Shown: positions 16,296-63,533 of the stretch, piece after piece | How positions within the stretch are numbered: position 1 is the first letter of the stretch | Layout: every line of letters starts with the position of its first letter | Assembly (NCBI RefSeq): GCF_902713615.1 | Contig: NC_052157.1 | Location: 58,354,325 to 58,418,324, forward strand | Reading direction: 5' to 3' | From: Scyliorhinus canicula | Lineage: Eukaryota | Length of the DNA stretch: 64,000 nt | The notes under the pieces: model-generated | What the model saw: only the letters and a program-made list of their open reading frames with translations | Told to the model about the DNA's origin: nothing | The model's database searches: none | Made by a program: the position numbers and the translations under genes

Positions 16296-16435
16296 TTAAA
16301 CAGACTGAGGACTTCCTTGAACTGTTCGTCTCTCCCAGACACAAATCCCAGCGACAGTGATAACGACAACCACAATGAATATCACAGCTCGTATTCCCAG
16401 GATCAGGATCACGTCCAGATTCTCTCCTCCACTGT
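16296..16435 (-). CDS. Terminal transmembrane exon with intramembrane Arg and short tail (activating-receptor type); candidate last exon of Siglec-like gene B
   Basis: Acceptor TGTGTTTTTCAG, phase 1; encodes (Y)SGGENLDVILILGIRAVIFIVVVVITVAGICVWERRTVQGSPQSV*. Not in the ORF track because it lacks an ATG. Confidence 0.75.
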
Positions 16436-16635
16436 CTGAAAAACACACAGAAAGAAATCATCATTTACTCTCTGCTTTCAATCTCTCACTCTGGCTGAAC
16501 AATCCAACTGAATATCACTGCGACATTTGCTGTAATATTGATCCATCCACTGGGATTAAATGGATCCTGAGTGGATAATCTGAAATCTCTCCTTAGCGTG
16601 GAACATTGGTGAGAATTGATCATTGTCCTGTTTGA

Positions 16636-17142
16636 CTCCCTGGCGTTGAGCCGCCCGGAAGGTGCGGAATCCTCCACACCTTCTGGGGCTAGGCCGGTGC
16701 CAGAGGGTTTGGTGCCACGCCAGCCGATATCAAAGGGCTTGGCGCCACGTCAACCGGCGCCGAAAGGCCTCCGCCGGCTGGCGCGAGTTGGCGCATGCGC
16801 GGGAATGGCAGCGTATGCTGGCGTCATCCCAGTGCATACGCAAGGGGGTTCGTCTCCGCACTGGCCATGGCGGAGGTCCACAGCAGCTGGTGCGGAGTGA
16901 GAGTGCCTCCACGGTACCCCCCGGGGCCAGATTCCCCCCGCCGGATGGACCGGCCTAAAACGGGCAGCCGCTCAGCCCATCGTGGGCCGGAGAATTGCCA
17001 GGGTGGGCCGCTGCCAGCGGCCGCCCATTCCTACCCCCGCCAAAACCCCGGCACCGGATAATTCGTCAGCCGGCGAGGGCAGGACTCACGCCACCCCCCC
17101 GGTAATTCTCCGGCCCGGCGGGGGGGTCGGAGAATTCCGCCC
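16636..17142. mobile_element. Non-autonomous Harbinger (MITE-like), left end unclear
   Basis: GC-rich; terminus GGAGAATTCCGCCC then CTG. Confidence 0.7.
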
Positions 17143-17341
17143 CTGGTTCATGATGCAGAGCGAGGCCAGCAGCGTGGGTTTATTTCCCATACTGGCTGAG
17201 GTTATTCACAAAATAATGTCACTGAACAGCTTCAGGGCATTCTGGAGAGGGAGGGAGATAAAACAGAGGTCATGGTACATGTTGGTACCAATGACATCGG
17301 AAGAAAGAGGGCTGAGGGGTTACATCAAGAATTCAGGGAAT

Positions 17342-17753
17342 TTTCATGATATGCAGGCACACACACACACATAATGATATACAGACAAGCAGCTAATGGA
17401 CACAGTAAACAGGACATGACCAATAAACAGGCAGGACACTCAGGGGTGGGATCTGACCATAAAAGACACGAGGCACTCACACTCCGCCTCTTTCCACTGA
17501 TGAACATCTAGAGAGTCAGTCAAGAATGTTGTTACAATCTCACACCTCCACCACGTGGCTAAGAGCTAGTCTGGTTCAGTCAGACAGAGTAACCACACTT
17601 AAGTTAACAGAGAGTCGAACTCACAGAGAGCTGTGCTAACTGTGCTATTAGTTCAATAAACCTGATTGAACTAACTTCAAGGTCTGGAGTATCTTTCTGA
17701 TCTAATCTGCATCCAGTTACAGCCAGTGTTAGACCAGTGTACCTAACGCAACA
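17342..17753 (+). mobile_element. Solo LTR in CR1 ORF1
   Basis: T(t)TCATGATAT...CAACA with AATAAA; TSD GGAAT/TGAAT (1 mismatch); layout like the 9178 LTR. Confidence 0.72.
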
Positions 17754-18316
17754 TGAATTAGGCAATAGACCTCTCGGGTTGTAATCTCTTGATTACACCC
17801 AGTCCCACGTTCTAGTGAATACAGAAATAGGAGAATAGCACAGATGAATGCATGGCTTAAGAGTTGGTGCAGGAGGGAAGATTTTAGATTCCTGGATCAT
17901 TGGGACCGTTTTTGGGGAAGATGGGACCTGTACAAGTGGGATGGTCTGCACCTTGTGGCGCTAACAATTGCACACAAAAGACTCGATACGGTACAAGAGA
18001 GGCTTTATTACAGTGAGAAGCTATTCCTTCGGCTGCAGCTGTAGAATGGCTTCTCAGGGAAACTTATGAATATTTATACTGCTCCCTGTGGGCGGAGCTA
18101 GCCGGCAGGGGCTTACCGGAAAACCTGTAATACAGGTACTGTCGTACATCCCCTAATGCAAGCACACACATATATACAGTGGTAGAGATCACCACATTCA
18201 CCCCCTGTAAAAAATGAGTCCGGCGGGGGTGACGTGAAACTATAATACATAAACGTGATCTATTTACAGAGGGGGGGGAAAAAGAACCAAGAGTCCATCG
18301 GGCAACCCAGTGCCCG

Positions 18317-20302
18317 TCACAGGTTGAGTCGGACCGGCGGTCGGACGTTCCGTTGCGAGCGGCGCAGCAGTGGTGGCGACGTCTGCACAGGCGGTGTCGG
18401 CGTCGACGGCGTAGGTGCTGACGGTGTTGGCACTGGCAAATGGCGCGATGACTCCGGGAGCGAGACAAAATCTTCCATGTCCTCTCGTGTGGGCAGGGGA
18501 ACGAGGGATGGACCTGGTGGGGCGGAATTCGGGGGTGCTGGGGAAAAGGAGAGTGGCGCGTGGGTAGGGAGGAGTGTGGGCATGGGGTCGGCACCCGAGG
18601 GAGCCAGGTCCCTGAGCGAGACTGTATCCTGGTGGCCGTCGGGGAACTCCACGTCGGCATACTGGGGGTTCGCGTGGGGCAGGCGTACCTTATCCACCAG
18701 AGGGTCTGTCTTGTGGAGTCTGACATGCCTACGAAGAAGGACTGGCCCTGGAGTAGCGAGCCAAGTCGGGAGCGACAACCCGGATGTAGACTTCCTAGGG
18801 AAGGCAAAAACACATTCATGGGGTGTACTGTTAGTTGCGGTGCACAGTAGCGACCGAATGGAATGGAGCGCGTCAGGGAGGACCTGCTGCCAGCGAGCGG
18901 CTGGGAGGTTCCTGGACCATAGGGCCAGCTGGACGGCCCTCCATAACGTCCCGTTCTCCCTCTCTACCTGCCCCTTTCCCCGGGGGTTGTAGCTGGTCGT
19001 CCTGCTGGAGGCGATATCCCTGCTGAGCAGGAACTGACACAGCTCATCACTCATGAATGAGGATCCCCTGTCACTGTGGATATATTCGGGGAAACCTAAC
19101 AGAGCGAATATGGAATCCAGGGCCTTGATGACGGTGGCAGACGTCATATCCAGGCATGAGATGGCGAAGGGGAACCTAGAGAATTCATCGACCACACTAA
19201 GGATGTACGTGTTGCGGTCGGTGGAGGGGAGGGGCCCTTTGAAATCCACGCTGAAGCGTTCAAAGGGGCGGGACGCTTTCACCAGGCGCGCGCGGTCTGG
19301 CCGGTAGAAGTGCGGCTTGCACTCCGCACAGACCTGGCAGTCTCTGGTGACTGTCCGTACTTCCTCGACAGAGTAGGGCAGATTGCGGGCTTTGACCAGA
19401 TGGTACAACCGAGTGACCCCCGGATGGCAAAGGCTCTCGTGCAAGGCACGTAGCTGATTCACTTGTGCGCTGGCACATGCACCTCGGGAGAGGGCATCTG
19501 GGGGTTCGTTGAGCTTGCCAGGGCAATACAAGATCTCGTAATTATAGGTGGAGAGCTCGATTCTCCACCGCAAGATTTTGTCGTTTTTGATCTTGCCCCG
19601 CTGCGTGTTGTTAAACATGAAGGCTACCGACTGTTGGTCAGTGAGGAGAGTGAATCTCCTGCCGGCCAGGTAATGCCTCCAGTGCCGCACCGCTTCAATG
19701 ATTGCCTGGGCCTCCTTCTCAACAGAGGAGTGTCGGATTTCGGAGGCGTGGAGGGTGCGGGAAAAGAATGCCACGGGTCTGCCTGCCTGGTATAGAGTGG
19801 CGGCAAGGGCGCCATCTGAAGTGTCGCACTCTACTTGGAAGGGCAGTGTCTCGTCTACTGCGTGCATCCCGGCCTTGGTTATGTCTGAGCGAATACGAGC
19901 GAAGGCCTGTTGTGCCTCGGCCGTGAGGGGAAATTGTGTGGACTGGATCAGTGGGCGGGCCTTGTCCGCGTATTGTGGGACCCACTGGGCATAGTAAGAA
20001 AAGAACCCCAGGCAGCGTTTGAGAGCCTTGAGGAAGTGGGGGAGGGGAAGCTCCATGAGGGGGCGCATGCGGTCGGGATCGGGCCCCAGTAGTCCGTTTT
20101 GGACTACGTAGCAGAAGATGGCTAAGCGGTCTGTGCGGAACACGCACTTCTCCTTGTTGTAAGTGAGGTTGAGGAGAGATGCGGTGTGGAGAAATTTAGC
20201 AAGGTTGGCGTCGTGGTCCTGCTGGTCATGGCCGCAGATGGTGACATTGTCTAAGTACGGAAACATGGCCCGCAGTCCGTACCGGTCAACCATTCGGACC
20301 AT
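18317..20302 (-). CDS. Gypsy pol segment: RT C-half, RNase H, integrase
   Basis: 661-aa ORF: FPYLDN, ECDTSD..VAFFSRTL..EKE, HHCC finger, SVDFKGP/HSDRG/ERENG DDE triad; no chromodomain. Confidence 0.9.
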   Translation of the reverse strand: MVRMVDRYGLRAMFPYLDNVTICGHDQQDHDANLAKFLHTASLLNLTYNKEKCVFRTDRLAIFCYVVQNGLLGPDPDRMRPLMELPLPHFLKALKRCLGFFSYYAQWVPQYADKARPLIQSTQFPLTAEAQQAFARIRSDITKAGMHAVDETLPFQVECDTSDGALAATLYQAGRPVAFFSRTLHASEIRHSSVEKEAQAIIEAVRHWRHYLAGRRFTLLTDQQSVAFMFNNTQRGKIKNDKILRWRIELSTYNYEILYCPGKLNEPPDALSRGACASAQVNQLRALHESLCHPGVTRLYHLVKARNLPYSVEEVRTVTRDCQVCAECKPHFYRPDRARLVKASRPFERFSVDFKGPLPSTDRNTYILSVVDEFSRFPFAISCLDMTSATVIKALDSIFALLGFPEYIHSDRGSSFMSDELCQFLLSRDIASSRTTSYNPRGKGQVERENGTLWRAVQLALWSRNLPAARWQQVLPDALHSIRSLLCTATNSTPHECVFAFPRKSTSGLSLPTWLATPGPVLLRRHVRLHKTDPLVDKVRLPHANPQYADVEFPDGHQDTVSLRDLAPSGADPMPTLLPTHAPLSFSPAPPNSAPPGPSLVPLPTREDMEDFVSLPESSRHLPVPTPSAPTPSTPTPPVQTSPPLLRRSQRNVRPPVRLNL

Positions 20303-21697
20303 TTCTCGCTGAAATACCGAGACCCCATTAGTGACGCCGAAGGGAACCCTAAGAAATTGATACAGTCGACCGTCTGCCTCGAAGGCAGTGTAGGGACGGT
20401 CCGATTTACAGATGGGGAGCTGGAGGTAGGCGGATTTCAGATCAATTGTGAAGACCCGGTACTGTGCAATCTGATTGACATATCAGATATGCGAGGGAGT
20501 GGGTATGCGTCGAGCTGCGCGTACTGGTTGATGGTCTGGCTGGAGTCCACGACCATCCTGTGTTTCTCCACCACCACTTGGGCCCTCCAGGGGCTATTGC
20601 TGGCCTCGATAATACCCTCCCGAAGCAGCAGCTGGACCTCGGACCTGATGAAGGACTTGTCCTGGGAGCTGTACCATCTGCTCCTGGTGGCGGCGGGCTT
20701 GCAGTCTGCAGTCAGATTGGCAAAGAGGGAGGGAAGGTCAACCTTGAGGGTCGTGAGGCCGAAAACGGTGATGGGAGGTAGGGGTCTGCCGAATTTGAGG
20801 GTGAGGCTCTGGAGGTTACATTGGAAATCCAGGCCCAGTAAGAGTGGCGCACAGAGGGTGGGGAGAACGTACAGGCGGAAACGGTTGAATTCAACGCCCT
20901 GTACGGTGAGTTTGACCAGACATAAGCCCCGGATCGGGACAGGGTGGGATCCGGAGGCCAGGGAGATCTGCTGGTTGGCAGGATGGACCGCAAGGGAGCA
21001 GCGCCTTACTGTGTCCGGATGGATGAAACTGTCCGTGCTCCCGGAGTCGATGAGACAGGAGGTCGCGTGGCCGTTGATGAGCACCATCGTAGAAACGGTG
21101 GCCAGGTTGCGAGGGCGGGATTGGTCGAGCATCATGGAGGCGAGTAGCGGGCGATTGACCGAAGAGTCCAACGAGTCCGATGAGTCGCGGCTGCGACCCG
21201 GGTCCCGTGGTCCCGTTCCAAGGGGAGGACAAAATGGCGGCGTCTGGAGTACCTGCGGAGAAGAAGATGGCGGCGCCCATGCAGCGCACGTTGCAGGGGC
21301 GGGGCAAGATGGCGGCGACCATGGAACGCACACGGAGTCGGAGGATGAAGCTGGCAGCACCATGGTGCGCACATGGCGGGGGCGGCGAAAGATGATGGCG
21401 CCCACTGATCGCACGTGGCCCCGGGGGCAGCGGACGGCAGGGCCCATTGCACGATCGGCTGCGGCGAGGGGGGGAGTTTGGGCGCGATAGCGGCAACTGC
21501 GCGGGACTAACACACCGCTGCAAAGTGGTCTTTCTTGCCACAGGATTTGCAGGTCGCGGTGCGGGCTGGGCAGCGCTGGCAGGGGAGCTTCTGCTGACCG
21601 CAGAAGTAGCAGCGGGGACCCCCAGGGTGCGTGGTGCGGCGAGCAGCGCAGGTGTAGTGCGCGGGGGAGGCTGCTGGGGGGGGGGCGGTTGCGGGGT

Positions 21698-22267
21698 TCA
21701 CGAGGGGTAGGATGGGTGCGCCGCACGGCTGGCGGGGTAGGATTGCACATTACGGGAAGTGGCCGTCATTGAGAGCGCTAAGGTCTTTGTTGCCACAAGA
21801 TCGAAAGCGGCCCCTTCCAGCAGTCGTTTCCGGATGGGGTCCGATGCAATATCCGTTACAAATACATCCCACATGAGTAGATTCAAATGTTCCATGGCCG
21901 AGACAGCCTGGCAGTCACAGTCCCGTACTAGAGGGATAAGAGCCCGCCAGAAGGCCTCAATCGACTCACCCGGTCGTTGAACGCGAGTGGCAAGTAAATG
22001 TCTCGCAAACAGAGTGTTCGTCGATTGAGCGTAATTCTCTTTGAGCAGTTCCATGGCCCGGGCGTAGGTAGGCGCATCCTGAATCAGCGGGAACACGCTG
22101 GAGCTCAGCCTTGAGTATAGGAGTTGTCCCTTCTGAGCCTCCGATGGTGCAGGGTCCGCTGAGGAGATGTAGGCCTCGAAAACAGCCAGCCAGTGGTTAA
22201 AGTCTTTCCTGGCGTGTGGCGACTGCTGATCCATCTGCAGGCGATCAGGCTTGATTCTGATGTCCAT
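21698..22267 (-). pseudogene. Gypsy gag N-terminal part ending at a premature TGA
   Basis: MDIRIKPDRLQMD...; CCHC knuckles and protease LIDSG follow in other frames. Confidence 0.85.
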
Positions 22268-23441
22268 GATGTTGGAAAATCTCACTGTAATAAATTGAGG
22301 CCCTAACAATTGCACACAAAAGACTCGATACGGTACAAGAGAGGCTTTATTACAGTGAGAAACTATTCCTTCGGCTGCAGCTGTAGAATGGCTTCTTAGG
22401 GAAACTTATGAATATTTATACTGCTCTCTGTGGGCGGAGCTAGCCGGCAGGGGCTTACCGGAAAACCTGTAATACAGGTACTGTCATACATCCCCTAATG
22501 CAAGCACAGATATATACAGTGGTAGAGATCACCACACACCTAAACCAGAGCGGAATCAACGTTATTGCAGGTGGGTTTGCTGGTGCTGTTGGGAAGAGTT
22601 TAAACTAGTTTGGCAGACTGAGAGCAGAATATGGACACAGTGTAACATAGAAAAGCCAACAGGTCATAGGGAATACAGCGGCAGTAAGTTTCAAGAGAGT
22701 ACAACAAGGCTGGAGTATTACAGGTAAAATAGATGAGATAAAGGTGATGATTGACACATATAATAGAGATCACAGAGACATGATTCAGTGAGGAGCAGGA
22801 TTGAATATCCGGGGAAATAGTATCTTCAGGCAAGAGAGAGGAGGGGATAGAAGAGGAGGAGGCTTTGCATTATTAGTCAAGGAGGCAGTTACTGCGGTAA
22901 GGAGGGATGATATCTTGAAGGGGGCATCAAATGAAACTTTGTGGGTAGAGCTAAGGAATAAAAAAGGGACAGCTATGTTGCTCGGCGTTTATTATAGACT
23001 TCCAGATAATCAGCATAAAATTGTGCGCAATTCACAGAGGGTTCTAAAAATAATAAGTGGGTAATTATATTAGGTGATTTCAACTTGCCCAAAATTAATT
23101 GGGATAGCCATCATATTAAGGTCTGAGGTGGAGTAGAGTTCTTAAAATGTATACTGGAGAACTTTTATTTCAATATGTAGAGGATTCAACAAGGGACGGT
23201 GTAGTGTTGGACCTAATTCTGGGGAATGAAGCCAGACAGGTGGTTGATGTGTTGGTGGGGGAGCATTTTAGTGATAGCGACCTTAATATGGTGCAATTTA
23301 AATTTCTTATGGACAAAGAAATGGACAAGTTGCAAAAAAAGGTTTTGGATTGGGGGAGAGCTGATTTTAACAAAGTAAGGCAGGATCTGGCCAAGGTAGA
23401 CTGGAAAGCGGTCCTTTTAGGGAAATCTGCAGATGAGCACT

Positions 23442-23474
<33 letters not shown>

Positions 23475-24578: not shown

Positions 24579-24613
24579 CACGAGCTTTCGGAGCACGGCT
24601 CCTTCTTCAGGTG
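24579..24613 (-). ncRNA. Minimal hammerhead ribozyme motif (mirror copy)
   Basis: Reverse complement of 24685-24719. Confidence 0.7.
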
Positions 24614-24684
24614 AATGGAAAGGCTTGTTCCTTTCAGGTTCCTTCAGGTGAATGGAAAGGCTTGTTGGAACAAGCCTTTCCATT

Positions 24685-26319: not shown

Positions 26320-27406
26320 GGAATTCACTCCCACAAGGAGTGGGGGGAATGTGGAACTCACTCCCACAAGGAGTGGGGGGAATGTGGAACTCACTCCCAC
26401 AAGGAGTGGGGGGAATGTGGAACTCACTCCCACAAAGAGTGAGGGGGAAATTGGAATTCACTCCCACAAAGAGTGGGGTGAAACTGGAATTCACTCCCAC
26501 AGGGGGTGGGGGGTAATGTGGAATTCACTCCCACAAGAAGTGGGGGGAATGTGGAATTCACTCCCACAAGAAGTGGGGGGAATGTGGAATTCACTCCCAC
26601 AAGGAGTGGGGGGAATGTGGAATTCACTCCCACAAGGAGTGAGGGGAAACTGGAATTCTCTCCCACAAAGAGTGGGGGGAATGTGGAATTCACTCCCACA
26701 AGGAGTGGGGGGAATGTGGAATTCACTCCCACAAGGAGTGGGGGGAATGTGGAACTCACTCCCACAAGGAATGGGGGGATGTGGATTTCACTCTCACAAG
26801 GAGTGGGGGGAAACTGGAATTCACTCCCACAAGCAGTGGGGGGAAACGGGAATTCACTCCCACATGGAGTGGGGGGAATGTGGAATTCACTCCCACAAGG
26901 AGTGGGGGGAATGTGGAACTCACTCCCACAAGGAGTGGGGGGAAACTGGAATTCACTCCCACAAAGAGTGAGGGGAAACTGGAATTCACTCCCACAAGGA
27001 GTGGGGGGAAACTGAAATTCACTCTCACAAGGAGTGGAGTGGAATGTGGAATTCACTCGCACAAGGAGTTGGGGGGGGGGGGGGGAATGTGGAATTCACT
27101 CCCACAAGGAGTGGGGGGAATGTGGAACTCACACCCACAAGGAGTGGGTGGAATGTGGAACTCACTCCCACAAGGAGTGGGGGGAATGTGGAACTCACTC
27201 CCACAAGGAGTGGGGGGAATGTGGAACTCACTCCCACAAGGAGTGGGGGGAATGTGGAACTCACTCCCACAAGGAGTGGGGGGAATGTGGAATTCACTCC
27301 CACAAGGAGTGGGGGGGAATGTGGAACTCACTGCCACAAGGAGTGGGGGGAAACTGGAATTCACTCCCACAATGAATGGGGGGAATGTGGAATTCACTCC
27401 CACAAG
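26320..27406. repeat. 33-bp minisatellite (GGAATTCACTCCCACAAGGAGTGGGGGGAATGT), about 33 units
   Basis: Contiguous units with no spacers; internal CACTCC/GGAGTG hairpin. Confidence 0.95.
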
Positions 27407-27440
27407 TGATGGCTCGCTCACCACAACTGAGAAGTGTATT

Positions 27441-27795: not shown

Positions 27796-28223
27796 TATTG
27801 CGGAGGGCCTGGTATTCAACAGGACAAAGCACAATCCAACAGGCAGTGGTAGTGAGAAGTGACTGAGGAGGATTCTGGATGAAGTAAGCTTGCTCACCAC
27901 AACTGAGAAGGGATTGCGGAAGACCCAGTGTCAAATACATTTAGATTAGGAGAATGAGCAGGTTGCATATTACCTCAAAAATATGAATCTAAGTGGAGAA
28001 GAGGAACAACATGATCTGGTGAAACAAGTACACAAATCACTAAAATTAGTGATACAGCTGAACAAGGTGATTAAACAAACAAAACAAACACTCGCAATTA
28101 TTTCAAGAGTGAAATAATCAAAAGTAACAGCCAAGCCAGCGGAGACCACCTCCTTTGAATGAATAAAAGAAAATGTTGAAGAAGACTTCTGGAGAACCTG
28201 CCATGTCCTGAGCCAAGCATCAC

Positions 28224-28493
28224 CTTAAATGTGTCATTTAATCCTATTCTGAAATAATAAGGTCCTGCATCTTTCTGTGTGATATTGGTTATAGTCAGCG
28301 AGCAGTCACCATCTTTCAGGCTTCCAGACAGCCGGGCCCGATGGCGGAAACATGGCACGTCGTGATTGTGATCCTCGGAGTGAAAGGCTGCAGTTGACGT
28401 GTCTCCTTTCTTGTTATTACACCAGACTCCAACTTGAGATTGGTTTCGCGTATTTGATGGACTACTGCAATTACATGGAATCTGTACACACAT
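28224..28493 (-). pseudogene. Truncated V-set exon of a third Siglec-like paralog (C)
   Basis: CVQIPC...FRHRARLSGSLKDGDCSLTITNITQKDAGPYYFRIG; the N-terminus and acceptor are replaced by minisatellite and the final strand is missing. Confidence 0.85.
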
Positions 28494-29745
28494 CTGAGGG
28501 AGTGCTGGACTGTCAGAGTGTCAGTACTGAGGGAGTGCTATACTATCAGACGGTTAGTACTCAGGGTGTGCTGCACTGTCAGAGGGTCAGTACTGAGGGA
28601 GTGCTATACTGTCAGAGGGTTAGTACTCAGGGAGTGCTGCACTGTCAGAGTGTCAATACTGAGGGAGTGCTGCACTATCGGAGGGTCAGTACTGAGGGAG
28701 TGCTGCACTATCGGAGGGTCAGTACGGAGGGAGTGCTGCACTGCTAGCTGGTCAGTACTGAGGGAGTGCTGCACTGTGAGAGGGTCAGTACTGAGGGAGT
28801 GCTGTACTCTCAGAGGGTCAGTACTGAGGGAGTGCTGCACTGTCAGAGAGTCAGTACTGAGGGAGTACTGCACTGTCAGAGGGTCAGTACTGAGGGAGTG
28901 CTGCACTGTCAGAGTGTCAATACTGAGGGAGTGCTGCACTGTCAGAGGGTTAGCATTGAGGGAGTGCTGCACTTTCAGAGGGTCTGCATTGAGGTAGTGC
29001 TGCACTGTCAGAGGGTGAGTACTGAGGGAGTGCTGCACTGTCAGAGGGTCAGTAATGAGGGAGTGCTGCACTGTCAGAGTGTCAATACTGAGGGAGTGCT
29101 GCACTATCAGAGGGTCAGTACTGAGGGAGTGCTGCACTATCAGAGGGTTAGCATTGAGGGAGTGCTGCACTGTCAGAGGGTCAGCATTAAGGTGGTGCTG
29201 CACTGTCAGAGGGTCAGTACTGAGGGAGTGCTGCACTGTTAGCTGGTCAGTACTGTGGGAGTATTGCATTGTTGGAAGGTTAGTATTGAGAGAGTGCTGC
29301 CCAATTGCAGGTTCTGCACAGAGTGAGTGCTGGACTGTCGGAATGTCAAGACTTAATGACTGCTGCATTGTTGAAGTGTCAGTACTGAGGGAGCATTGCA
29401 CTGCCAGAGGGTCAGTATTGAAGGAGTATGTCACTCTCAGAGGGTCAATATTGAGGGAGTGCTGCACTGCCGGTCGGTCAGAACTAAGGGATTTCTACGC
29501 TCTGGATGGGTGAGTACTGAGGTAGTGCTGCACTGTCGGAGGGCAAGTACTGAGGGAGCACTGCACTCTCAGATGATCAGTGCTGCGAGGGTACTGCACT
29601 GTTGGTGAGTCAGTGCTGTGGGAGTGCTGCACTGTCGGAGGGCAAGTATTGAGGGAGCGCTGCACTGTCAGATGATCAGTGCTGCGAGAGTACTGCACTG
29701 TTGGTGAGTCAGTGCTGTGGGAGTGTTGAACTGTTGGAGGGTCCT
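28494..29745. repeat. 33-bp minisatellite (CAGTACTGAGGGAGTGCTGCACTGTCAGAGGGT), copy 1
   Basis: Same unit as 58540-61270, in the intron after the first C2 exon; degenerates to the right. Confidence 0.92.
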
Positions 29746-30241
29746 ATTGAGTCATAGACTCATGTGTCATCTTTGTTACAAGGGACTTTCAGATATTTCC
29801 ACTACCAAGTCTGTTAATAAACTCTACTCACTATTGTACCTTATATTAACCAGTACAATACAGTAAGAGGCTCTCCATAGAATTATCTATCTTCATTCTT
29901 TGTTGTCACGTGATCTTATTTAATTTCTGATGTATACCATTTATTTATATATTTACTCTTCGCACTTTATGTTATATTTCCCCCGAAGTCTCTGACACCT
30001 TAAGATATATGTACATTATTTACCTTATCCTCTTTCATAGTGGATGTTAAATCTGGGTCCCTTCCGCTCCCTCAGAAGGAGATAAATATTCCCAAGGCAC
30101 TTTGCAAGGAGAATTCACACTGGAAATATTTCTCACTGAGAAGGACAATTTTTGTCTTCAGCACATTGCTGTTTGAGGGTTCATGCTCTGCCCTCTCTAA
30201 ATTAATACAGCTCATATAGAATTCATTTTGTCCCTACTTAC

Positions 30242-30535
30242 ATTGCACAGTGAGTATGAGGGTCCGCTCCGATGAAACAGATGGATATCTCAGTCTACAG
30301 GTGAGAGTTTGTCCGTGGTGTCTGAGTGATGGGATCAGGGTCAGAACAGAAGTATAGGTCAGAGTGACGCCATGCTGAGTTACTGTATTTGAGACTGATC
30401 CAGGTACGTCAGTGGGAGTGTCCCAGGTTAAGGCAGGTGCTGTTCCGTTGCATGTTGTGTTGAAGGTGCAGCTTATGTCCACACGCTTTCCTGCAATAAT
30501 TTCAGCCAGGAATATCCTGGGTTTATCTGTGAAAT
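30242..30535 (-). CDS. Siglec-like gene B, C2-set Ig exon
   Basis: 294 bp, AG/GT, phase 1-1; DFTDKPRI...ISCTFNTTCNGTAPALTW...GQTLTCRL...LTVQ; extra Cys for the interdomain bond. Confidence 0.9.
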
Positions 30536-31280
30536 CTGACACACAGAGAATGGATATTTTTAGATAAATATAATGTGACGAGCAGTTCAAATAGAAATCA
30601 CAGTCCCACAAGTGAAAGCCCCTTTCCAAAGATGGTATGAGAACAGAAAGATTACAATGATCAATAAAGTATTTCCCATTTTCTATCATAGAGGAGTGTC
30701 TGTCCTCAGGTTCATGCCCTTTGACTCTAAGACCATTGAATTGAGATTCCTTCGTGAGAGGGGAGGAGTTCAGGCTGAACTGGCTCATTACTTTACAGAA
30801 ATCTGACAAATTAAAATTAAATCTGGACTAGAGCAAAATGGAAACTATCTGAACCATCACCTGCAACAGATGAGCAAATTATTGATCACATGGCTGTTTC
30901 TGGCATCACAGCAGAGACTTCATTTCAAGAATTATTTCACTGTGAATCGCTTTGGGATGTTCGGAGGGGGTGAAAGGCGCGCGAGAAACATGAGTCTTTA
31001 TTTTGTCGATATGTAAACTTTTAAACAAGATTCGAGAGATCGATGGGAGTGGATAACCTGATAACATTGGTGAGCACAATCAATCAATTTAATTATTGAT
31101 ATTAAAGAGAGTATTAAAGGTTGCTTTAGGACTGAAGTGGAAATATCACCAGGTTATTGATAATCAGACACTGTGTTATAATAAGCTGTTTTTTGTGTTA
31201 ATGTGTAAATGTCACAGTTTGTGATCTTTCCCATTGAGTATTAGATGTGAATTGTTGAGTAATTATAATACAGCACTTAC

Positions 31281-31649
31281 CAGAAACATGAAGCCGTGTT
31301 GCAGGATAATAGCTATAGCCGAGACCGCTGTCAAATTCTATCCTGAAAAAATAAGGTCCCGTATCTTCCCGCCTGATGTTGTTTATTATCAGGGAACAGT
31401 CTCCGTCTTTCAGGTCTCCAGACAGCCGGGTCCGATGACGGAATTTTGGTGACTCATGATTGTGATCCTTGGAGTGGAAGGCTAGGGGAGCCCAGGGAAT
31501 CTCTTCCTCAGTATTAAACCAGAGTGCACCTCGCGGTTGAGTTGCTAAATGTGACGGATAGCTGTAATGACATGGAATCTTCACACATGAACCTTCCTGC
31601 GCTGTCACCTCTCGTGGAGTGTCACCTTTCCACTCTTGTGACAGTCCAA
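31281..31649 (-). CDS. Siglec-like gene B, sialic-acid-binding V-set exon
   Basis: 369 bp, AG/GT, phase 1-1; GSCVKIPC, GDCSL, YFFRIE (essential Arg, no F-strand Cys), the Siglec V-set signature. Confidence 0.92.
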
Positions 31650-31709
31650 CTGGGGAGAGAAATATCAATATTTAACACTGGATGGTTTGTAGATCCACTA
31701 GACTCGATA

Positions 31710-43006: not shown

Positions 43007-43046
43007 CTTGAAGAAGTGACATGAGGAAGTAAGATTTCCCGATCAT
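43007..43046 (-). CDS. Siglec-like gene B leader (signal peptide) exon
   Basis: ATG at 43046: MIGKSYFLMSLLQ+G|GTAATA, phase 1, joins V exon to give ...LLQVGLSQEWKG; acceptor CTGCAG just upstream. Confidence 0.75.
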
Positions 43047-44648: not shown

Positions 44649-44649
44649 A

Positions 44650-49500: not shown

Positions 49501-52500
49501 TTCCCAAGCATAACTTCTCAAGCATACTTGTCACATATGCCCCAGCATCCAATCCCTCGCTGCCCTCCGGGAGGCCAAAGATCCTCAAGTTCTGCCTCTG
49601 GGACCTATTGTCCAGGTGCTCCAATTTCTCCTGCAGCCTTTTCTGGGGGTCCCTCATCATAAGAACATAAGAACTAGGAGCAGGAGTAGGCCATCTGGCC
49701 CCTCCAGCCTGCTCCGCCATTCAATTAGATCATGGCTGATCTTTTGTGGACTCACCTCCACTTTCCGGCCCGAACACCATAACCCTTAATCCCTTTATTC
49801 TTCAAAAAACTATCTATCTTTACCTTAAAAACATGTAATGAAGGAGCCTCAACTGCTTCACTGGGCAAGGAATTCCATAGATTCACAACCCTTTGGGTGA
49901 AGAAGTTCCTCCTAAACTCAGTTCTAAATCTACTTCCCCTTATTTTGAGGCTATGCCCCCTAGTTCTGCTGTCACCCGCCAGTGGAAACAACCTGCCCGC
50001 ATCTATCCTATCTATTCCCTTCATAATTTTAAATGTTTCTATAAGATCCCCCCTCATCCTTCTAAATTCCAACGAGTACAGTCCCAGTCTACTCAACCTC
50101 TCCTCATAATCCAACCCCTTCAGCTCTGGGATTAACCTAGTGAATCTCCTCTGCACACCCTCCAGCGCCAGTACATCCTTTCTCAAGTAAGGAGACCAAA
50201 ACTGAACACAATACTCCAGGTGTGGCCGCACTAACACCTTATACAATTGCAACATAACCTCCCTAGTCTTAAACTCCATCCCTCTAGCAATGAAGGACAA
50301 AATTCCATTTGCCTTCTTAATCACCTGTTGCACTTGTAAACCAACCTTCTGTGACTCATGCACTAGCACACCCAAGTCTCTCTGAACAGCGGCATGCTTT
50401 AATATTTATCGTTTAAATTATAATCCCGTTTGCTGTTATTCCTACCAAAATGGATAACCTCACATTTGTCAACATTGTATTCCATCTGCCAGACCCGAGC
50501 CCATTCACTTAACCTATCCAAATCCCTCTGCAGACTTCCAGTATCCTCTGCACTTTTCGCTTTACCACTCATCTTAGTGTCATCTGCAAACTTGGACACA
50601 TTGCCCTTGGTCCCCAACTCCAAATCATCAATGTAAATTGTGAACAATTGTGGGCCCAACACGGATCCCTGAGGGACACCACTAGCCACTGATTGCCAAC
50701 CAGAGAAACACCCATTTATCCCAACTCTTTGCTTTCTATTAATTAACCAATCCTCTATCCATGCTACTACTTTACCCTTAATGCCATGCATCTTTATCTT
50801 ATGCAGCAACCTTTTGTGTGGCACTTTGTCAAAGGCTTTCTGGAAATCCAGATATACCACATCCATCGGCTCCCCGTTATCTACTGCACTGGTAATGTCC
50901 TCAAAAAATTCCACTAAATTAGTTAGGCATGACCTGCCTTTTACGAACCCATGCTGCGTCTGCCCAATGGGACAATTTCTATCCAGATGCCTCGCAATTT
51001 CTTCCTTGATGATAGATTCCAGCATCTTCCCTATTACCGAAGTTAAACTCACTGGCCTATAATTTCCTGCTTTCTGCCTACCTCCTTTTTTAAACAGTGG
51101 CGTCACGTTTGCTAATTTCCAATCCACCGGGACCACCCCAGAGTCTAGTGAATTTCGGTAAATTATCACTAGTGCATCTGCAATTTCCCTAGCCATCTCT
51201 TTTAGCACTCTGGGATGCATTCCATCAGGGCCAGGAGACTTGTCTACCTTTAGCCCCATTAGCTTTCCCATCACTCCCTCCTTAGTGATAACAATCCTCT
51301 CAAGGTCCTCACCTGTCATAGCTTCATTTCTATCAGTCGCTGGCATGTTATTTGTGTCTTCCACTGTGAAGACCGACCCAAAAAACCTGTTCAGTTCCTC
51401 AGCCATTTCCTCATTTCCCATTATTAAAACTCCCTTCTCATCCTCTAAAGGACTGATATTTACCTTAGCCACTCTTTTTTGTCTTATATATTTGTAAAAA
51501 CTTTTACTGTCTGTTTTTATATTCTGAGCAAGTTTACTTTCATACTCTATCTTACTCTTCTTTATAGCTTTTTTAGTAGCTTTCTGTTGCCCCCTAAAGA
51601 TTTCCCAGTCCTCTAATCTCCCAGCAATCTTTGCCACTTTATATGCTTTTTCCTTCAATTTGATACTCTCCCTTATTTCCTTAGATATCCACGGTCGATT
51701 TTCCCTCTTTCTTCCGTCCTTCCTTTTTGTTGGTATAAACCTTTGCTGAGCACTGTGAAAAATCGCTTGGAAGGTTCTCCACTGTTCCTCAACTGTTCCA
51801 CCATAAAGTCTTAGCTCCCAGTCTACCTTAGCTAGTTCTTCTCTCATCCCCTTGTAATCTCCTTTGTTTAAACACAAAACACTAGTATTTGATTTTACTT
51901 TCTCACCCTCCATCTGTATTTTAAATTCCACCATATTGTGATCGCTCCTTCCGAGAGGATCCCTAACTATGAGATCATGAATCAATCCTGTCTCATTACA
52001 CAGGACAAGATCTAGGACCACTTGTTCCCTCGTAGGTTCCATTACATACTGTTCTAGGAAACTATCGCGGATACATTCTATAAACTCCTCCTCACGGTTG
52101 CCTTGACCGACCTGGTTAAACCAATCGACATGTAGATTAAAATCCCGCATGATAACTGCTGTACCATTTCTACATGCATCAGTTATTTCTTTGTTTATTG
52201 CCTGCCCCACCATCTCGTTACTATTTGGTGGCCGATAGACTACTCCTATCAGTGACTTTTTCGCCTTACTATTCCTGATTTCCACCCAAATGGATTCAAC
52301 CTTATCCTCCATAGCACCGATGTCATCCCTTACTATTGCCCGGATGTCATCCTTAAATAACAGAGCAACACCACCTCCCTTACCATCCACTCTGTCCTTC
52401 CGAATAGTTTGATACCCTCGGATATTTAACTCCCAGTCGTGACCATCCTTTAACCATGTTTCAGTAATGGCCACTAAATCATAGTCATTTACGATGATTT

Positions 52501-52900
52501 GTGCCACCAACTCATTTACTTTATTCCGAATACTACGAGCATTCAGGTAAAGTACACTTATGTTGGTTTTTTTTAACACCTCCGCCTCCGCCTCCAGCAC
52601 GGTTACCTGGTCCTCGTGCTCGGCCACCTTCTCCTCCGCCTTTTGGATCACCAGTCCGTGGGCTTCAGAACCCTGTTCCACCCGGTCAATCGAGACATGG
52701 ACCAGAAGTGGTCTTATAAGAAGAAATAGCCGAGCAAAGAAGGCGCGTGCCAAACCTACAGCACAGGAAACCATGGCAGAGGTGTAGGATCCTGGCTTGG
52801 TGGCCCAGTGGTCAACAGTACAGTTGGTTAAATTCATTCAGGAGAGCTTCGCCAAGCAAAAGAAGGAATGTTTAGACCCGATCAAGGCACACGTTTATTA
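46580..52900 (-). mobile_element. L1/Tx1-clade LINE, degenerate, ORF1 split by a CR1
   Basis: ORF1 LDNRSQRQNLRIFGLPEG; endonuclease LITWNIRGLN..ETQL; GKALGPDGY; C-terminal LSLIQFKVVHR. Confidence 0.85.
49661..52576 (-). mobile_element. Young CR1 LINE with essentially complete ORF2 (APE endonuclease + RT), one frameshift
   Basis: LYLNARSIRNK, GDYKG, GVPQGSVLGP, FADDTK; 1-bp deletion near 50405; ORF resumes 50375-49752. Confidence 0.95.
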
Positions 52901-55700: not shown

Positions 55701-55710
55701 CTGACAGAGT

Positions 55711-57219: not shown

Positions 57220-57316
57220 TTTCTCACATACACGAAGATTAACATTCCAGCCAGGAAACAACTCAAGATGATCCCAGCCGTGATCAATCCTACTGTCCAG
57301 TTTTTAGAGTCTCTAC
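57220..57316 (-). CDS. Siglec-like gene A transmembrane exon (uncharged)
   Basis: TTTTTACAG / GTAAGT; (R)RDSKNWTVGLITAGIILSCFLAGMLIFVYVR(N); phase 1 in, phase 2 out, matching both neighbours. Confidence 0.88.
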
Positions 57317-58127: not shown

Positions 58128-58409
58128 GTTCCACAATGATGGTTATGGACCCCTCCACTGCTCCATGTTCATTCTCTGCTGCACACTCATAGTCTCCAGT
58201 GTCCCTGGATGTAACGTGAGGAATCACCAACCACAGCTCATTGTTGGAACTTGTTCTGTTCATTGTGACATTGAGATGTCCCCACGTCAGGTTAGAAGCT
58301 GGGAAGCTCGCGACAGAGCAGATTATCACTGCAGAGTCACCCTCAATTATATTGATGGATGAAGTGTAAATCATATCAAAAGAATTCATTGATAGATTCT
58401 GTGGTGCAT
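58128..58409 (-). CDS. Siglec-like gene A second C2/I-set Ig exon
   Basis: 282 bp, phase 1-1; YAPQNLS...IICSVASFPASNLTW...DTGDYECAAENEHG. Confidence 0.9.
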
Positions 58410-58539
58410 CTAAAATTGAATAAAAATCATTCAACTTACATTGACTGTGAAGACATTTGAGAGACCATGAGGAAGCAAAAGGTGTGAAATCAAGATAGGT
58501 TCCTTCACCACAAAGCACATACTCCAGACAGACACTACG

Positions 58540-61270
58540 GTTCAGTACTGAGAGAGTGCAACACTGCTGGAAGGTCAGTATTGCAGGAGTGCTATCCTAT
58601 CAGAGGGTCAGTACTGAGCGAGCGCAGCACTGTCAGAGGATCAGTACTCAAGGAGTGCTATCCTATCAGAGGGTCAGTACTGAGCGAGCGCTGCACTGTC
58701 AGAGGATCAGTACTCAAGGAGTGCTGCAGTGTCAGAGGGTCAGTACTGAGGGAGCGCCGCACTGTCAGAGGGTCAGTACTGAGGGAATGCTGCAGTGTCA
58801 GAGGGTCAGTTCTAAGGGAGTGCTGCACTGTCAGAGAGTCAGTACTGGGGAAGTGCTGCAGTGTCAGAGGGTCAGTACTGAGGTGGTGCTGCATTGTCAG
58901 AGAAGAGTCAGTACTGAGGGAGCGCTGCATTGTCAGAGAGTTAGTACTGAAGGAGGGCTGCACTGTCAGAGAGTCAGTACTGAGGAAGTGCTGCAATGTC
59001 AAAGGATCTGTACTGAGGGAGTGTTGCACTGTCAGAGGGTCAGTACTGAGGGACTGCTGCACAGTCAAAGTCAGTACTGAGGAAGTGCTGCATTGTCAGA
59101 GAGTCAGTACTGAGGGAGGGCTGCAATGTCAGAGAGTCAGTACTGAGGGAGGGCTGCAATGTCAAAGGACCTGTACTGAGGGGAGGCTGCACTGTTGAAG
59201 GGTCAGTACTGAGCAACTGCTGAACTATCACAGGGTCAGTACTGAAGGAGCGCTGCGATGTTGGAGCGTTAGTACTGAGGGATTGCTGCACTGTCGGAGG
59301 ATCAGAACTCAGGGAGTACTGCACTGACAGAGGGTCAGTACTGAGGGAGTGCTGCACTGTCAGAGGGTCAGTACTGAAGGAGCGCTGCACTGTCAGAGGG
59401 TCAGTACTGAGGGAAGAAGCACTGTCAGAGGGTCAGAACTGAAGGAGCGCTGCACTGTCAGAGGGACAGTACTGAGGGAGTCCTGCACTGTCAGAGGGTC
59501 AGTACGGAAGGAGCGCTGCCCTGTCAGAGGGTCAGTACTGAGGGAGTGCTCCACTATTGGAGGGTCAGTACTAAGGGAGTGCTGCACTGTCAGAGAGTCA
59601 GTACTGAGGGAGTGCTGCACTGACAGAGGGTCAGTACTGAGGGAGTGCTGCACTGTCAGAGGGTCAGTACAGAGAGTGTGCTGCAAATTCGAAGGGTCAG
59701 TATTGAGGGAGTTCTTCACTGTCAGAGGGTCAGTACTGAGGGAGTGCTGCACTGTCAGAGGGTCAGTACTGAAGGAGTGCCGCACTGTCAGAGAGTCAGT
59801 ACTGAGGGAGTGCTGCACTGTCAGAGGGTCAGTACTGAGGGAGTGCTGCACTGTCAGAGGGTCAGTCCAGAGAGTGTGCTGCAAATTCGAAGGGTCAGTA
59901 CGGAGGGAGTTCTTCACTGTCAGATGGTCAGTACTGAGGGAGTGCTGCACTGTCAGAGGGTCAGTACTAAGGGAGTGCTGCAATGTCAAAGGATCTGTAC
60001 TGAGGGAGTGCTGCACTGTCAGAGGGTCAGTACTGAGGGACTGCTGCACAGTCAGAGTCAGTACTGAGGAAGTGCTGCATTGTCAGAGAGTCAGTACTGA
60101 GGGAGGGCTGCAATGTCAAAGGTCCTGTACTGAGGGGATGCTGCACTGTTGAAGGGTCAGTACTGAGCAACTGCTGAACTATCACAGGGTCAGTACTGAA
60201 GGAGCGCTGCAATGTTGGAGCGTTAGTACTGATAGATTGCTGCACTGTCGGAGGATCAGAACTCAGGGAGTACTGCACTGACAGAGGGTCAGTACTGAGG
60301 GAGTGCTGCACTGTCAGAGGGTCAGTACTGAAAGAGCGCTGCACTGTCAGAGGGTCAGTACTGAGGGAGTGATGCACTGTCAGAGGGTCAGAACTGAAGG
60401 AGCGCTGCACTGTCAGAGGGACAGTACTGAGGGAGTCCTGCACTGTCAGAGGGTCAGTACTGAAGGAGCGCTGCCCTGTCAGAGGGTCAGTGCTGAGTGA
60501 GTGCTCCACTATTGGAGGGTCAGTACTGAGGGAGTGCTGCACTGACAGAGGGTCAGTACTGAGGGTGTGCTGCACTGTCAGAGGGTCAGTACTGAGGGAG
60601 TGCTGCACTGTCAGAGGGTCAGTACAGAGTGTGTGCTGCAAATTCGAAGGGTCAGTATTGAGGGAGTTCTTCACTGTCAGAGGGTCAGTACTGAGGGACT
60701 GCTGCACAGTCAGAGTCAGTACTGAGGAAGTGCCGCACTGTCAGAGAGTCAGTACTGAGGGAGTGCTGCACTGTCAGAGGGTCAGTACTGAGGGAGTGCT
60801 GCACTGTCAGAGGGTCAGTCCAGAGAGTGTGCTGCAAATTCGAAGGGTCAGTACGGAGGGAGTTCTTCACTGTCAGATGGTCAGTACTGAGGGAGTGCTG
60901 CACTGTCAGAGGGTCCGTACTGAGGGAGTGCTGCACTGTCAGAGAGTCAGTACAGAGTGTGTGCTGCAAATTCGAAGGGTCAGTATTGAGGGAGTTCTTC
61001 ACTGTCAGAGGGTCAGTACTGAGGGAGTGCTGCACTGTCAGAGGGTCAGTACTGAAGGAGTGCCGCACTGTCAGAGAGTCAGTACTGAGGGAGTGCTGCA
61101 CTGTCAGAGGGTCAGTACTGAGGGAGTGCTGCACTGTCAGAGGGTCAGTCCAGAGAGTGTGCTGCAAATTTGAAGGGTCAGTACGGAGGGAGTTCTTCAC
61201 TGTCAGATGGTCAGTACTGAGCGAGTGCTGCACTGTCAGAGGGTCAGTGCTGAGGGAGTGTTGGACTGAC
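58540..61270. repeat. 33-bp minisatellite, copy 2, with higher-order duplications
   Basis: Same unit as 28494-29745; variant block GTGTGCTGCAAATTCGAAGG recurs six times; about 59060-59640 is repeated at about 60050-60560. Confidence 0.95.
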
Positions 61271-61493
61271 GGATGTGCATTCTTTCAAATGAAATATGAA
61301 ACCTTGAATACTGTGCCGTCTCAGGTGGATATAATTCATCCTAAGACATGATTTAATGGAGGGCTCACACTTGACACGATTGATAACTGAAGGCAGTTGT
61401 CCCAGTTCAAACCACTGTGCTGTTTGCAGGATTCTTGCTGTGAAAAATGGAAACTATTACACCTGATATAGAATGAAAGATACCCATACTTAC

Positions 61494-61787
61494 ATTGCAC
61501 AGTGAGTATGAGGGTCCGCTCCGGTGAAACAGATGGATCTCTCAGTCTACAGGTGAGAGTTTGTCCGTGGTGTCTGAGTGATGGGGTCAGGCTGAGAACA
61601 GAAGTATAGGTCAGAGTGACGCCATGCTGAGTTACTGTGTTTGAGACTGATCCAGGTACGTCAGTGGGAGTGTCCCAGGTTAAGACAGGTGCTGTTCCGT
61701 TGCACGTTGTGTTGAAGATGCAGTTTATGTCCACACGCTTTCCTGCAATAATTTCAGCAGGGACTATCCTGGGATTATCTGTGAAGT
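61494..61787 (-). CDS. Siglec-like gene A first C2-set Ig exon
   Basis: 294 bp, phase 1-1, close paralog of 30242-30535, open frame. Confidence 0.9.
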
Positions 61788-62755
61788 CTAACACAGAGAG
61801 AATGGATCCTTTTAGATAAATATAATGTGACCATTAGTTCAAATAGAAATGACAGTCCCACAAGAGAAAGCCTTTTTACAAGGATGATATCGGAATAGAA
61901 AGATTACAATGATCATTGAAGAATTTCCTATTTTTAGACTTGATGAAGCTCTGTCACTCAGCTGAATGCACTTTCACTCAGTGACCTTTGATTTGACCAC
62001 ACTGGGTGAGGGCGGATAAACAGCTCACAGCTCGGGGAGAACAGGTTCATCACTTTGTCCAAAATCTTCCAAAGTTAAATTGAAACCTGACCCCAGCAGG
62101 ACAGGAACAATTTGAAACCATCTCCAAAACAGCAGCTTAAACAGAATAAGAGTTCTCTTGAACCGGAATTATCAACTCTGTTTCTCTCCACACAGACGCT
62201 GACAGACCTGCTGAGGTTTTCCAGAATTTTCTGGGGGGTTTTCAGATCTCCGACATCTGCAGTGTTTTGCTTTCACTGGAATCAGGTGATCAGGTTATTG
62301 ATCACATTGCTGTTTGTGGGATCTTGCTGTGCATCAACTAGTCACAAATCAATCCAGTCGGAAATCAGAAGGTATTTATTTACCAGAGTGTTCCGAATGA
62401 ACATTCAGGAATTATTTCACTGTCTGTGAATCGATTTGGGATGTCCTGAGAAAGGTGCTGCAGAAATTTGATTCTTTTGTCGATATGTAAGACTTTTAAA
62501 CAGGATTAGAGAGATCGATAAGAGTGCATAATCCGATAACATTGATATGGACTCTCAATACATTTAATTATTGATATTAAAGAGAGTATTAAAGGTTGCT
62601 TTAGGACTGAAGTGGAAATATCATCAGGTTATTGATAATCAGACACTGTGTTATAATAAGCTGTGTTTTGTATTAATGTGTAAATGTCACAGTTTGTGTT
62701 ATTTCCCATTGAGTGTTGGATGTGAATTGTTGAGTAATTATAATACAGCACTTAC

Positions 62756-63533
62756 CAGAAACATGAAGCCGTGTTGCAGGATAATAGTTATGGCCGAGAC
62801 CACTGTCAAATTCTATCCTGAAAAAATAAGGTCCCGTATCTTCCCGCCTGATGTTGTTTATTATCAGGGAACAGTCTCCGTCTTTCAGGTCTCCAGACAG
62901 CCGGGTCCGATGGCGGAACCGTGGCAATTCGTGTTTGTGATCCTTGGAGTGGAAGGCTAGGGGCGCCCAGGGATTCACTTCCTCAATATTAAACCAGACT
63001 ATTCTTCGCGGTTGGTTTTTCAGACACAATGGATAACTGCAATGACTTGGAATCTTCACACACGAACCTTCCTGCGCTGTTACCTCTCGTAGAGTTTGGC
63101 CTTTCCACCAGAAACGGCCCTAGGGTTGCTGGCACCCCGGGCAAGCTGAACTTCGGCGCCCTTCGGTTGGGGGGGGGGGCTCCGTTCACCGAGGGAAGGG
63201 GGGGGGCGCCGGAGTGACCTGGTACATGATCGGGACCCACCGATCGGCGGGCCGGTCTTTCTGTCGGCAGGCCTCCTTTCTTCCACCGGCGTGCCTGGAT
63301 CCATCCGCCATGTTTGTGCGGGGCGGCCTGGGGGAGGGCGGCCACCGCGCATGCGCTGGTTGGTACCGGCCCAACTGCGCATGCGCGGGACCCGAGTCTT
63401 TTACGCGGCGCCGGGTCTCTGACGCCGGTCACACACTCCTTGATGGCGCCCCCTAGCACATGGCGCCCCGGGCGACTGCCCGAGTTGCCGGTACCTTGAG
63501 CCGGCCCTGCTTTCCACTCTTGTGACAGTTCAG
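62756..63533 (-). pseudogene. Siglec-like gene A V-set exon interrupted by a hAT MITE
   Basis: Removing 409 bp (insert + one TSD) restores a 369-bp exon with GDCSL and YFFRIE; leader exon lies beyond the window. Confidence 0.9.
63109..63509. mobile_element. Non-autonomous hAT-type element, 401 bp
   Basis: 8-bp TSD CTTTCCAC (63101-63108 and 63510-63517); imperfect TIRs CAGAAACGGCCC / GAGCCGGCCCTG. Confidence 0.88.

Follow-up and report, generated by a model that had tools for sequence, protein, structure and literature searches.

Organization of the Siglec-like locus

The window analyzed here is the whole stretch of 64,000 nucleotides from contig NC_052157.1 of the catshark Scyliorhinus canicula (positions 58,354,325 to 58,418,324), in which an earlier note had claimed two tandem genes of the Siglec type (sialic acid-binding immunoglobulin (Ig)-like lectins) with opposite signaling ends. 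Both genes were located by their exons and motifs, and each of them corresponds to a RefSeq model of S. canicula. Gene A is the model P0172 ("sialic acid-binding Ig-like lectin 13", 415 amino acid residues), which has an inhibitory-type tail, and gene B is the model P0157 ("sialic acid-binding Ig-like lectin 14 isoform X2", 273 amino acid residues), which has an activating-type transmembrane (TM) segment. We take the window to hold part of a cluster of CD33-like Siglec genes, a family in which some members are of the inhibitory and others of the activating type, in the broad sense of the KIR and LILR families, and not a pair of the Siglec-5/14 type; the probability of this reading is put at roughly 0.7.

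The 64-kb sequence was free of N runs, and repeats and transposons were abundant in it. Every Siglec-like exon was found on the minus strand. When the open reading frames (ORFs) of all six frames were compared with Pfam, three V-set exons (near 63.0k, 31.5k, and 28.4k), two C2-set exons (61.6k and 30.4k) and one I-set exon (58.3k) were obtained, and each of the V-set exons also matched the CD22-like first-Ig model. When the minus strand was scanned for hydropathy, two TM exons emerged, namely a neutral one at 57.3k and one containing an Arg at 16.4k. Only one intact Siglec V exon lies inside the window, and it is that of gene B. The two genes are arranged in tandem, with 10.9 kb between the stop codon of gene A and the ATG of gene B, and all of their exons are bounded by AG/GT splice sites with compatible phases. 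The coordinates are collected in Table 1.

Table 1. Siglec-like exons of the catshark window and the repeats associated with them (positions counted from the first letter of the window).
Feature	Position	Strand	Evidence or remark
Gene A C2-set exon	61494..61787	-	Identical to the corresponding P0172 residues; Pfam
Gene A I-set Ig exon	58128..58409	-	Pfam Ig_3 and I-set; exact P0172 match
Gene A neutral TM exon (RDSKNWTVGLITAGIILSCFLAGMLIFVYVR)	57220..57316	-	Hydropathy scan; splice sites
Gene A cytoplasmic tail exon: ITIM LPYATI, ITIM-like MEYAEI, stop codon	53933..54101	-	Identical to the C terminus of P0172
Gene B exon 1, signal peptide MIGKSYFLMSLLQ	43007..43046	-	ATG at 43046, donor G/gtaata; 100% match to P0157 residues 1-13
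Gene B V-set exon, intact	31281..31649	-	Pfam V-set E 5e-13, Ig_CD22; PDB Siglec-5 E 2.5e-18
Gene B C2-set exon	30242..30535	-	Pfam C2-set_2; splice sites
Arg-TM exon with short Tyr-free tail and stop (SGGENLDVILILGIRAVIFIVVVVITVAGICVWERRTVQGSPQSV, stop)	16296..16435	-	Final coding exon of gene B according to P0157
Broken V exon inside gene A	62756..63533	-	401-bp insertion, CVKIPS; skipped by P0172
Decayed V-like pseudo-exon	28200..28493	-	In the last intron of gene B; 5' end cut by 33-bp minisatellite
33-bp minisatellite	28494..29743		After the gene B C2 exon; homologous to the array 58542-61268
33-bp minisatellite	58542..61268		Gene A intron, C2 to Ig exon
Ty3/gypsy-type retroelement ORFs (gag, protease, RNase H, integrase)	18317..22315	-	Within the last intron of gene B, 13.8 kb

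Signaling ends of genes A and B

The part of gene A that lies inside the window runs from the C2-set exon to the stop codon. The signal peptide and V residues of P0172 are not in the window; on GCA_902713615.2, the gene spans 26.6 kb, and its start lies ∼16.5 kb past position 64000. The neutral TM segment at 57.3k reads GLITAGIILSCFLAGMLIFVYV in the hydropathy scan, and the motif scan revealed that the tail exon at 54.0k closes with ...PDNLPYATINFSKGPNGDRTVHRSEVMEYAEIRFQRN and a stop codon. Within this tail, an ITIM (immunoreceptor tyrosine-based inhibitory motif), LPYATI, is followed 24 residues later by the ITIM-like motif MEYAEI. The neutral TM segment and the two Tyr motifs that had been ascribed to this gene were therefore both recovered.

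Segments taken from P0157 recurred in the window without any difference. The V exon of gene B contains the motifs GSCVKIPC, DGDCSL, and YFFRIE, the last with the conserved Arg. The Arg-TM exon encodes VILILGIRAVIFIVVVVITVAGICVW, followed by the tail ERRTVQGSPQSV, which is 12 residues long and contains no Tyr, and by a stop codon; a few hydrophobic residues precede the Arg of the TM segment and ∼18 follow it. The ORF of this exon was 100% identical to residues 236-273 of P0157 (38 aligned residues, 16433-16320), and the RefSeq model joins the V and C2 exons of gene B to it through phase-1 compatible sites. The earlier placement of gene B upstream of an Arg-bearing TM exon with a short tail lacking Tyr was thus confirmed, the two being joined in P0157. 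The isoform X2 models of P0157 and of its paralog P0167 stop at ...WERRTV, and the exon's own frame goes on with QGSPQSV to a stop (window 16320). A donor inside the Arg-TM exon (ACA/GTTCAA) may lead to another 3' exon.

Siglec identity of the gene B ectodomain

When the V domain of gene B was compared with PDB sequences, the best match was Siglec-5 (E 2.5e-18, 69 bits), and Siglec-8, Siglec-10, Siglec-7, CD33, MAG, and sialoadhesin followed at ∼1e-13. The matches to Siglec-15 (E 2.5e-7) and CD22 (E 8e-4) were far weaker. The bit scores of MAG (53) and sialoadhesin (51) were on par with those of the other CD33-type domains. The Arg of YFFRIE aligned with the essential Arg of human Siglec-5 (YFFRVE), and this residue (R103) was invariant in an alignment of 47 V-C2 relatives, among them Tupaia CD33, monkey Siglec-12, frog Siglec-5, and relatives from gar and bowfin. 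In the same alignment, C22, C27, and C85 of gene B were invariant, together with a few core residues, and C146, C152, and C203 were nearly invariant. The Siglec cysteine pattern (CxxxxC, the Cys of DCSL and one additional Cys in the second domain) was found in gene B and was not found in the V exon at 63k.

The same identity was indicated by the predicted structure. The AlphaFold model of P0157 had a mean predicted local distance difference test score of 93 over residues 14-236, and its 36 best fold matches in the PDB were all Siglecs (CD33, Siglec-10, Siglec-5, MAG, and CD22), with template-modeling scores of at most 0.83. P0157 is laid out as a Siglec-type type I membrane protein, with a V-set domain and then a C2-set domain between the signal and TM exons. 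Judging from the sequence, gene B and the family to which it belongs would be expected to bind sialic acid.

A Siglec family in sharks, rays, and skates

A library search performed by HMMER with the V exon of gene B yielded 1,580 matches, of which 36 were below 1e-30. Across many sharks, rays, and skates, RefSeq names the relatives Siglec-5, -7, -8, -10, -12, -13, and -14, CD33-like or MAG-like, and at least nine models of the family lie on a single S. canicula chromosome. Four kinds of tail were found in the family: an ITIM with an ITIM-like motif, a YxN type, a short neutral type, and the Arg-TM type. Members annotated without a TM segment (P0161 and P0008) are also present.

The Arg-TM exon was ∼75-90% conserved over ∼45 residues, as read by eye. 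It is carried by P0157 and P0167 of S. canicula, by P0006, P0120, and P0151 of S. torazame, by P0155, P0156, and P0166 of Carcharodon carcharias, and by P0021 of Chiloscyllium punctatum, and the Arg with its hydrophobic flanks (VILILGI-R-AVIF) is kept across three shark orders. In these sharks, the ILGIRA TM exon mostly stands directly after the C2 exon, and the layout of V, C2, and Arg-TM that P0157 shows is also found in P0167, P0120, P0155, P0156, and P0166. A stingray model (P0210) has another Arg-bearing TM segment.

The inhibitory tails of the family read LLYANINFSKLPSGDGTVHRSE.TEYAQIRFQ, to be compared with ELHYASLSFHGMTPQEGTSTEYSEIRTQ in Tupaia CD33; that is, shark tails with LLYANINF...TEYAQIRFQ resemble the mammalian LHYASLSF...TEYSEIR. 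This CD33-type likeness of the inhibitory tail favors a shared ancestry with the mammalian inhibitory form, as far as can be judged from the motifs. In a tree of the C2 domains, the sequences grouped by taxon, with activating and inhibitory genes mixed in each group, and only three branches were well supported; the tree fits an exchange of ectodomain modules between activating and inhibitory genes, without proving it.

Two further features of the family were observed. The YxN tails have two motifs at the end, for example DIYENC...SIYENV (P0007, P0027, P0031, P0159, P0171, P0174-P0178, and others); they recall the Grb2-binding YENV sites, and the family may have more than two signaling flavors. 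Many models have two to six tandem V domains of the Siglec type before the C2 domain, namely P0001 of S. canicula, P0151 and P0006 of S. torazame, P0002 of Hypanus sabinus, and P0003-P0005. Some of these multi-V models may be fusions; genuine multi-V genes would fit with the broken V exon that lies downstream of the functional V exon of gene A. We know of no mammalian Siglec with such a tandem multi-V layout.

A broken V exon inside gene A

The exon at 63k closely resembles the V exon of gene B, with ∼88% identity in DNA and 83% in protein. It carries a 401-bp insertion of 70% G+C (63509-63109), 24 bases into the exon, which is flanked by an 8-bp target duplication (GTGGAAAG); 409 bases are added in all and the frame is shifted. 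Moreover, the exon reads CVKIPSHC, compared with CVKIPCHY in gene B and the family, and the second Cys of CxxxxC, which was invariant among the 47 relatives, is lost. This exon is skipped by P0172, whose V exon lies past position 64000, and not one of 298 retrieved family proteins contained its peptides. In principle, the frame could be kept if an AG at 63101 acted as a new acceptor, and the ratio of non-synonymous to synonymous differences (pN/pS) between this exon and the V exon of gene B was 0.41, a value that cannot tell a pseudo-exon from a constrained exon. As it stands, the V exon at 63k is dead.

The insertion has CAG-type ends. No further copy of it was found within the window, and an Rfam scan gave no match. 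A small hAT-like element is a possible identity, judged only from the 8-bp duplication and the CAG ends.

Between the V exon of gene B and that at 63k, a run of 110 bp was identical (permutation p ∼2e-4). It was accompanied by a tract of 300 alignment columns with 10 mismatches, compared with ∼32 expected, which reaches into the intron (0 of 5,000 shuffles were as extreme). This tract of low divergence suggests a later gene conversion between the two loci, one partner of which is now a dead exon.

Origin of gene B

The block that is duplicated between genes A and B consists of the V exon, the C2 exon, and the start of one 33-bp minisatellite. In gene A the array precedes the I-set exon, and in gene B it runs directly into the truncated V fragment at 28.4k. 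This fragment contains stray cysteines and has neither a G strand nor a donor site, and its nearest intact relative is the V domain of the activating-type paralog P0167, with 67% identity. On the simplest reading, gene B is probably chimeric: the duplicated module of V, C2, and minisatellite would have been placed before the remains of another activating-type gene, represented by the V fragment and the Arg-TM exon. The module would have landed upstream of this older gene and taken its Arg-TM exon.

More tentatively, and with somewhat less than an even chance, the locus may be part of an old elasmobranch CD33-type system, in which a conserved Arg-TM exon (at least three shark orders) was repeatedly recombined with V-C2 modules exchanged between gene kinds. 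Gene B would then be a fresh chimera.

Transcripts of gene B

Public S. canicula RNA runs contained the V/C2 stretch and the TM stretch, and their contigs were compared with 30100-31800 and 15700-17300. The V to C2 splice of gene B (31281/30535) was observed in contigs of the runs X2 and X4, with 2-3 mismatches per 226-288 bases (∼99% identity) and a depth of 3-6. The V and C2 exons of gene B are therefore transcribed and joined, at low depth. The acceptor at 16435 was used in contigs of the runs X2, X3, and X6, and X1 gave just 8 loose letters. The 16435 contigs continue into ...AGTTATCACCCTGTTACCCGGCTTCAGGTTTCAG, which encodes SYHPVTRLQVS, the end of a Siglec V exon, joined to DSGGENLD; catshark transcripts do link Arg-TM exons of this kind to Siglec V exons. 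In these contigs, the V exon is joined straight to the Arg-TM exon, with no C2 or Ig exon between them, and the product appears to be a V-only or multi-V activating form of a paralog. Of the transcript proposed earlier, which would lead from the ectodomain of gene B to the Arg-TM exon, the V to C2 splice and the use of the 16435 acceptor were seen, and the connection between the two was not.

Several observations weigh against our reading. Among the RNA contigs on these two intervals, none contained a junction from C2 to Arg-TM that is specific to gene B. At the C2 donor of gene B, the loose contig ends (YAPQNLSITS and SPQNLSMTS) corresponded to I-set exons of paralogs, and the contigs with a perfect match halted at the exon edge. 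The V sequence SYHPVTRLQVS was absent from the window at up to 3 mismatches, which points to a paralog or to a chimeric assembly. The deepest TM contigs differed from the window at 8-11 positions, as paralogs would give, and the TM peptide of the paralog P0167 is identical to that of gene B. Accordingly, the join between the ectodomain of gene B and the Arg-TM exon is taken from the RefSeq isoform model and from analogy, and not from a junction seen in RNA. The last intron of gene B, moreover, is 13.8 kb long and rich in transposons. The functional V domains of genes A (P0172) and B (P0157) share 65% identity. The Arg of the gene B TM segment could lie at the membrane edge and not inside the membrane. 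Lastly, FcRgamma was not found in shark data in a 2014 survey (PMC4016189), and no newer literature on shark FcRgamma was found in the searchable literature, which is incomplete.

The first alternative to be weighed is that gene B does not function as an activating receptor: its connection with the Arg-TM exon would be a modeling artifact or rare, and the locus would give either no product, a decoy, or a V-C2 protein in soluble form. The lack of a gene B-specific junction contig, the V-C2 depth of 3-6, the long transposon-filled intron with its dead V exon, and the annotated members without a TM segment (P0161 and P0008) would all agree with it. It is nevertheless considered unlikely, given that the RefSeq isoform joins the exons exactly at compatible phase-1 sites, that the ORF of the TM exon is identical to P0157 over all 38 residues, and that the same layout of V, C2, and Arg-TM recurs in the five other models named above.

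Comparison of genes A and B as a pair

According to the literature, paired Siglecs have 'highly homologous' extracellular domains and opposing signaling, and their likeness is kept by gene conversion (PMC6288428). A strict pair of the Siglec-5/14 type would mean that the ligand-binding domains of genes A and B are near-identical and kept so by gene conversion, with gene B serving as a counter-trap for pathogens that engage gene A. The 110-bp identical run, the 300-bp tract of few mismatches, and the ∼88% DNA identity would speak for such a pair, but all three concern the V exon at 63k, which is frameshifted, has lost a Cys, and is skipped in P0172. The functional V domains share only the 65% identity given above, and the closest intact V domain of an ITIM-bearing gene to that of gene B is P0158 (84% identity), which lies elsewhere on the chromosome, whereas the human pairs are highly homologous by the description cited above. 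A strict pair is thus regarded as very unlikely.

At the level of sequence, the opposing ends are present in the catshark genes, but the likeness of the functional V domains is absent, and for this reason the genes are not placed with the pairs of the Siglec-5/14 type. At 65% identity, a ligand shared by A and B is not implied. The claim of closely related V-set ectodomains stands for gene B, whose V exon is intact with all its motifs, and falls for gene A, whose similar V exon is broken and whose functional V domain is the more distant one. The logic of the Siglec-5/14 pair, which the earlier note had seen in the two genes, was not borne out: the V exons that are 83% identical include a broken one, and the genes belong to a family of many genes and not to a pair of two. 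Since the look-alike V exon is broken, the catshark finding is weaker than the earlier note held.

Predicted signaling of genes A and B

By analogy with other ITIM receptors, the ITIM and ITIM-like motifs in the tail of gene A would recruit SHP-type phosphatases and damp signaling. The TM Arg of gene B would pair with the Asp of an adaptor containing an ITAM (immunoreceptor tyrosine-based activation motif) and activate, as in Siglec-14, -15, and -16 and in FcRgamma-coupled receptors. Opposite signaling by the two genes and the coupling of gene B to an adaptor are predicted from these parallels, and the adaptor step is the least secure. An Arg with a few hydrophobic residues before it and ∼18 after it is as reminiscent of receptors coupled to FcRgamma as of those coupled to DAP12. 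That the Arg-TM form sends no signal through an ITAM adaptor, its Arg being interfacial or serving in retention or oligomerization so that there is no true activating arm, is highly improbable: the 18 hydrophobic residues after the Arg could span the membrane alone and FcRgamma was reported absent from sharks in the 2014 survey already cited, but VILILGI-R-AVIF is conserved in three shark orders, the pattern is like that of FcRgamma-coupled Arg-TM segments, and a short tail without Tyr is typical of adaptor-dependent receptors.

Other repeats in the window

A second 33-bp minisatellite was found at 26320-27406 (32 copies), and its unit differs from that of the arrays in the Siglec introns. Between 5201 and 8948, ∼250 copies of a 15-bp unit (GTTCCTCTGCGGCAT) give rise, on either strand, to spurious ORFs that exceed 1,400 codons. 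An ORF for a Harbinger/PIF-type DDE transposase is located at 4160-4924 (minus strand), and a long interspersed nuclear element with endonuclease and reverse transcriptase lies between genes A and B at 50399-52837 (minus strand).

Relation to known systems and significance

The catshark genes resemble the human Siglec-5/14 and Siglec-11/16 pairs in being neighbors, in their V-C2 ectodomain, in the contrast of a tail with ITIM and ITIM-like motifs and a charged TM segment with a short tail, and in signs of sequence exchange between the loci. They differ from these pairs in the 65% identity of their functional V domains, in the broken state of the look-alike V exon that the inhibitory gene carries, and in belonging to a many-gene family.

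With the mammalian CD33-related Siglecs (CD33, Siglec-5, -7, -8, and -10), the catshark family shares the best sequence and fold matches, the Cys pattern, and the essential Arg, as well as the motifs of the tail and their spacing (Tupaia CD33 and monkey Siglec-12) and an arrangement in clusters of fast-diversifying genes. However, MAG and sialoadhesin score nearly as high as most CD33-type V domains, and some of the shark members have two to six V domains.

Siglec-15 is an activating-type receptor coupled to DAP12, in which the charged TM residue is a Lys; it is a single conserved gene and is present in fishes. The catshark system differs from it in that the V match is far weaker than that to Siglec-5 and that the Arg-TM exon occurs in an expanded family. 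The KIR, LILR/PIR, and PILR families and the teleost NITR/LITR families are alike in having related ectodomains with ITIM or charged-TM ends, in clusters, with exon shuffling. They differ in the fold of the ectodomain, which in the catshark is of the Siglec type, and PILR matched the V domain only at E ∼1e-4.

Genes A and B already bore names from automatic annotation, one name being borrowed from the human activating Siglec-14, and the gain would lie in recognition and experimental testing and not in unknown genes. The searchable literature, which is incomplete, yielded no publication on Siglecs of the CD33 or paired type from cartilaginous fish, and one shark genome paper mentions Siglecs in passing. 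The catshark genes genuinely extend a known design to sharks, and this extension is of moderate interest.

Paired and CD33-type Siglecs are usually treated as a fast-evolving mammalian trait that is tied to pathogens mimicking sialic acid. If the tentative picture of an old elasmobranch system is true, paired Siglec signaling is either older than the divergence of bony from cartilaginous vertebrates or had an independent origin in cartilaginous fishes that long preceded the primate pairs. This design would be moved to a much earlier date by a shark family that has the Siglec fold, the essential Arg, a very similar tail with ITIM and ITIM-like motifs, and a conserved Arg-TM variant, and such a family would give a second, independent lineage in which the evolution of such families can be studied.

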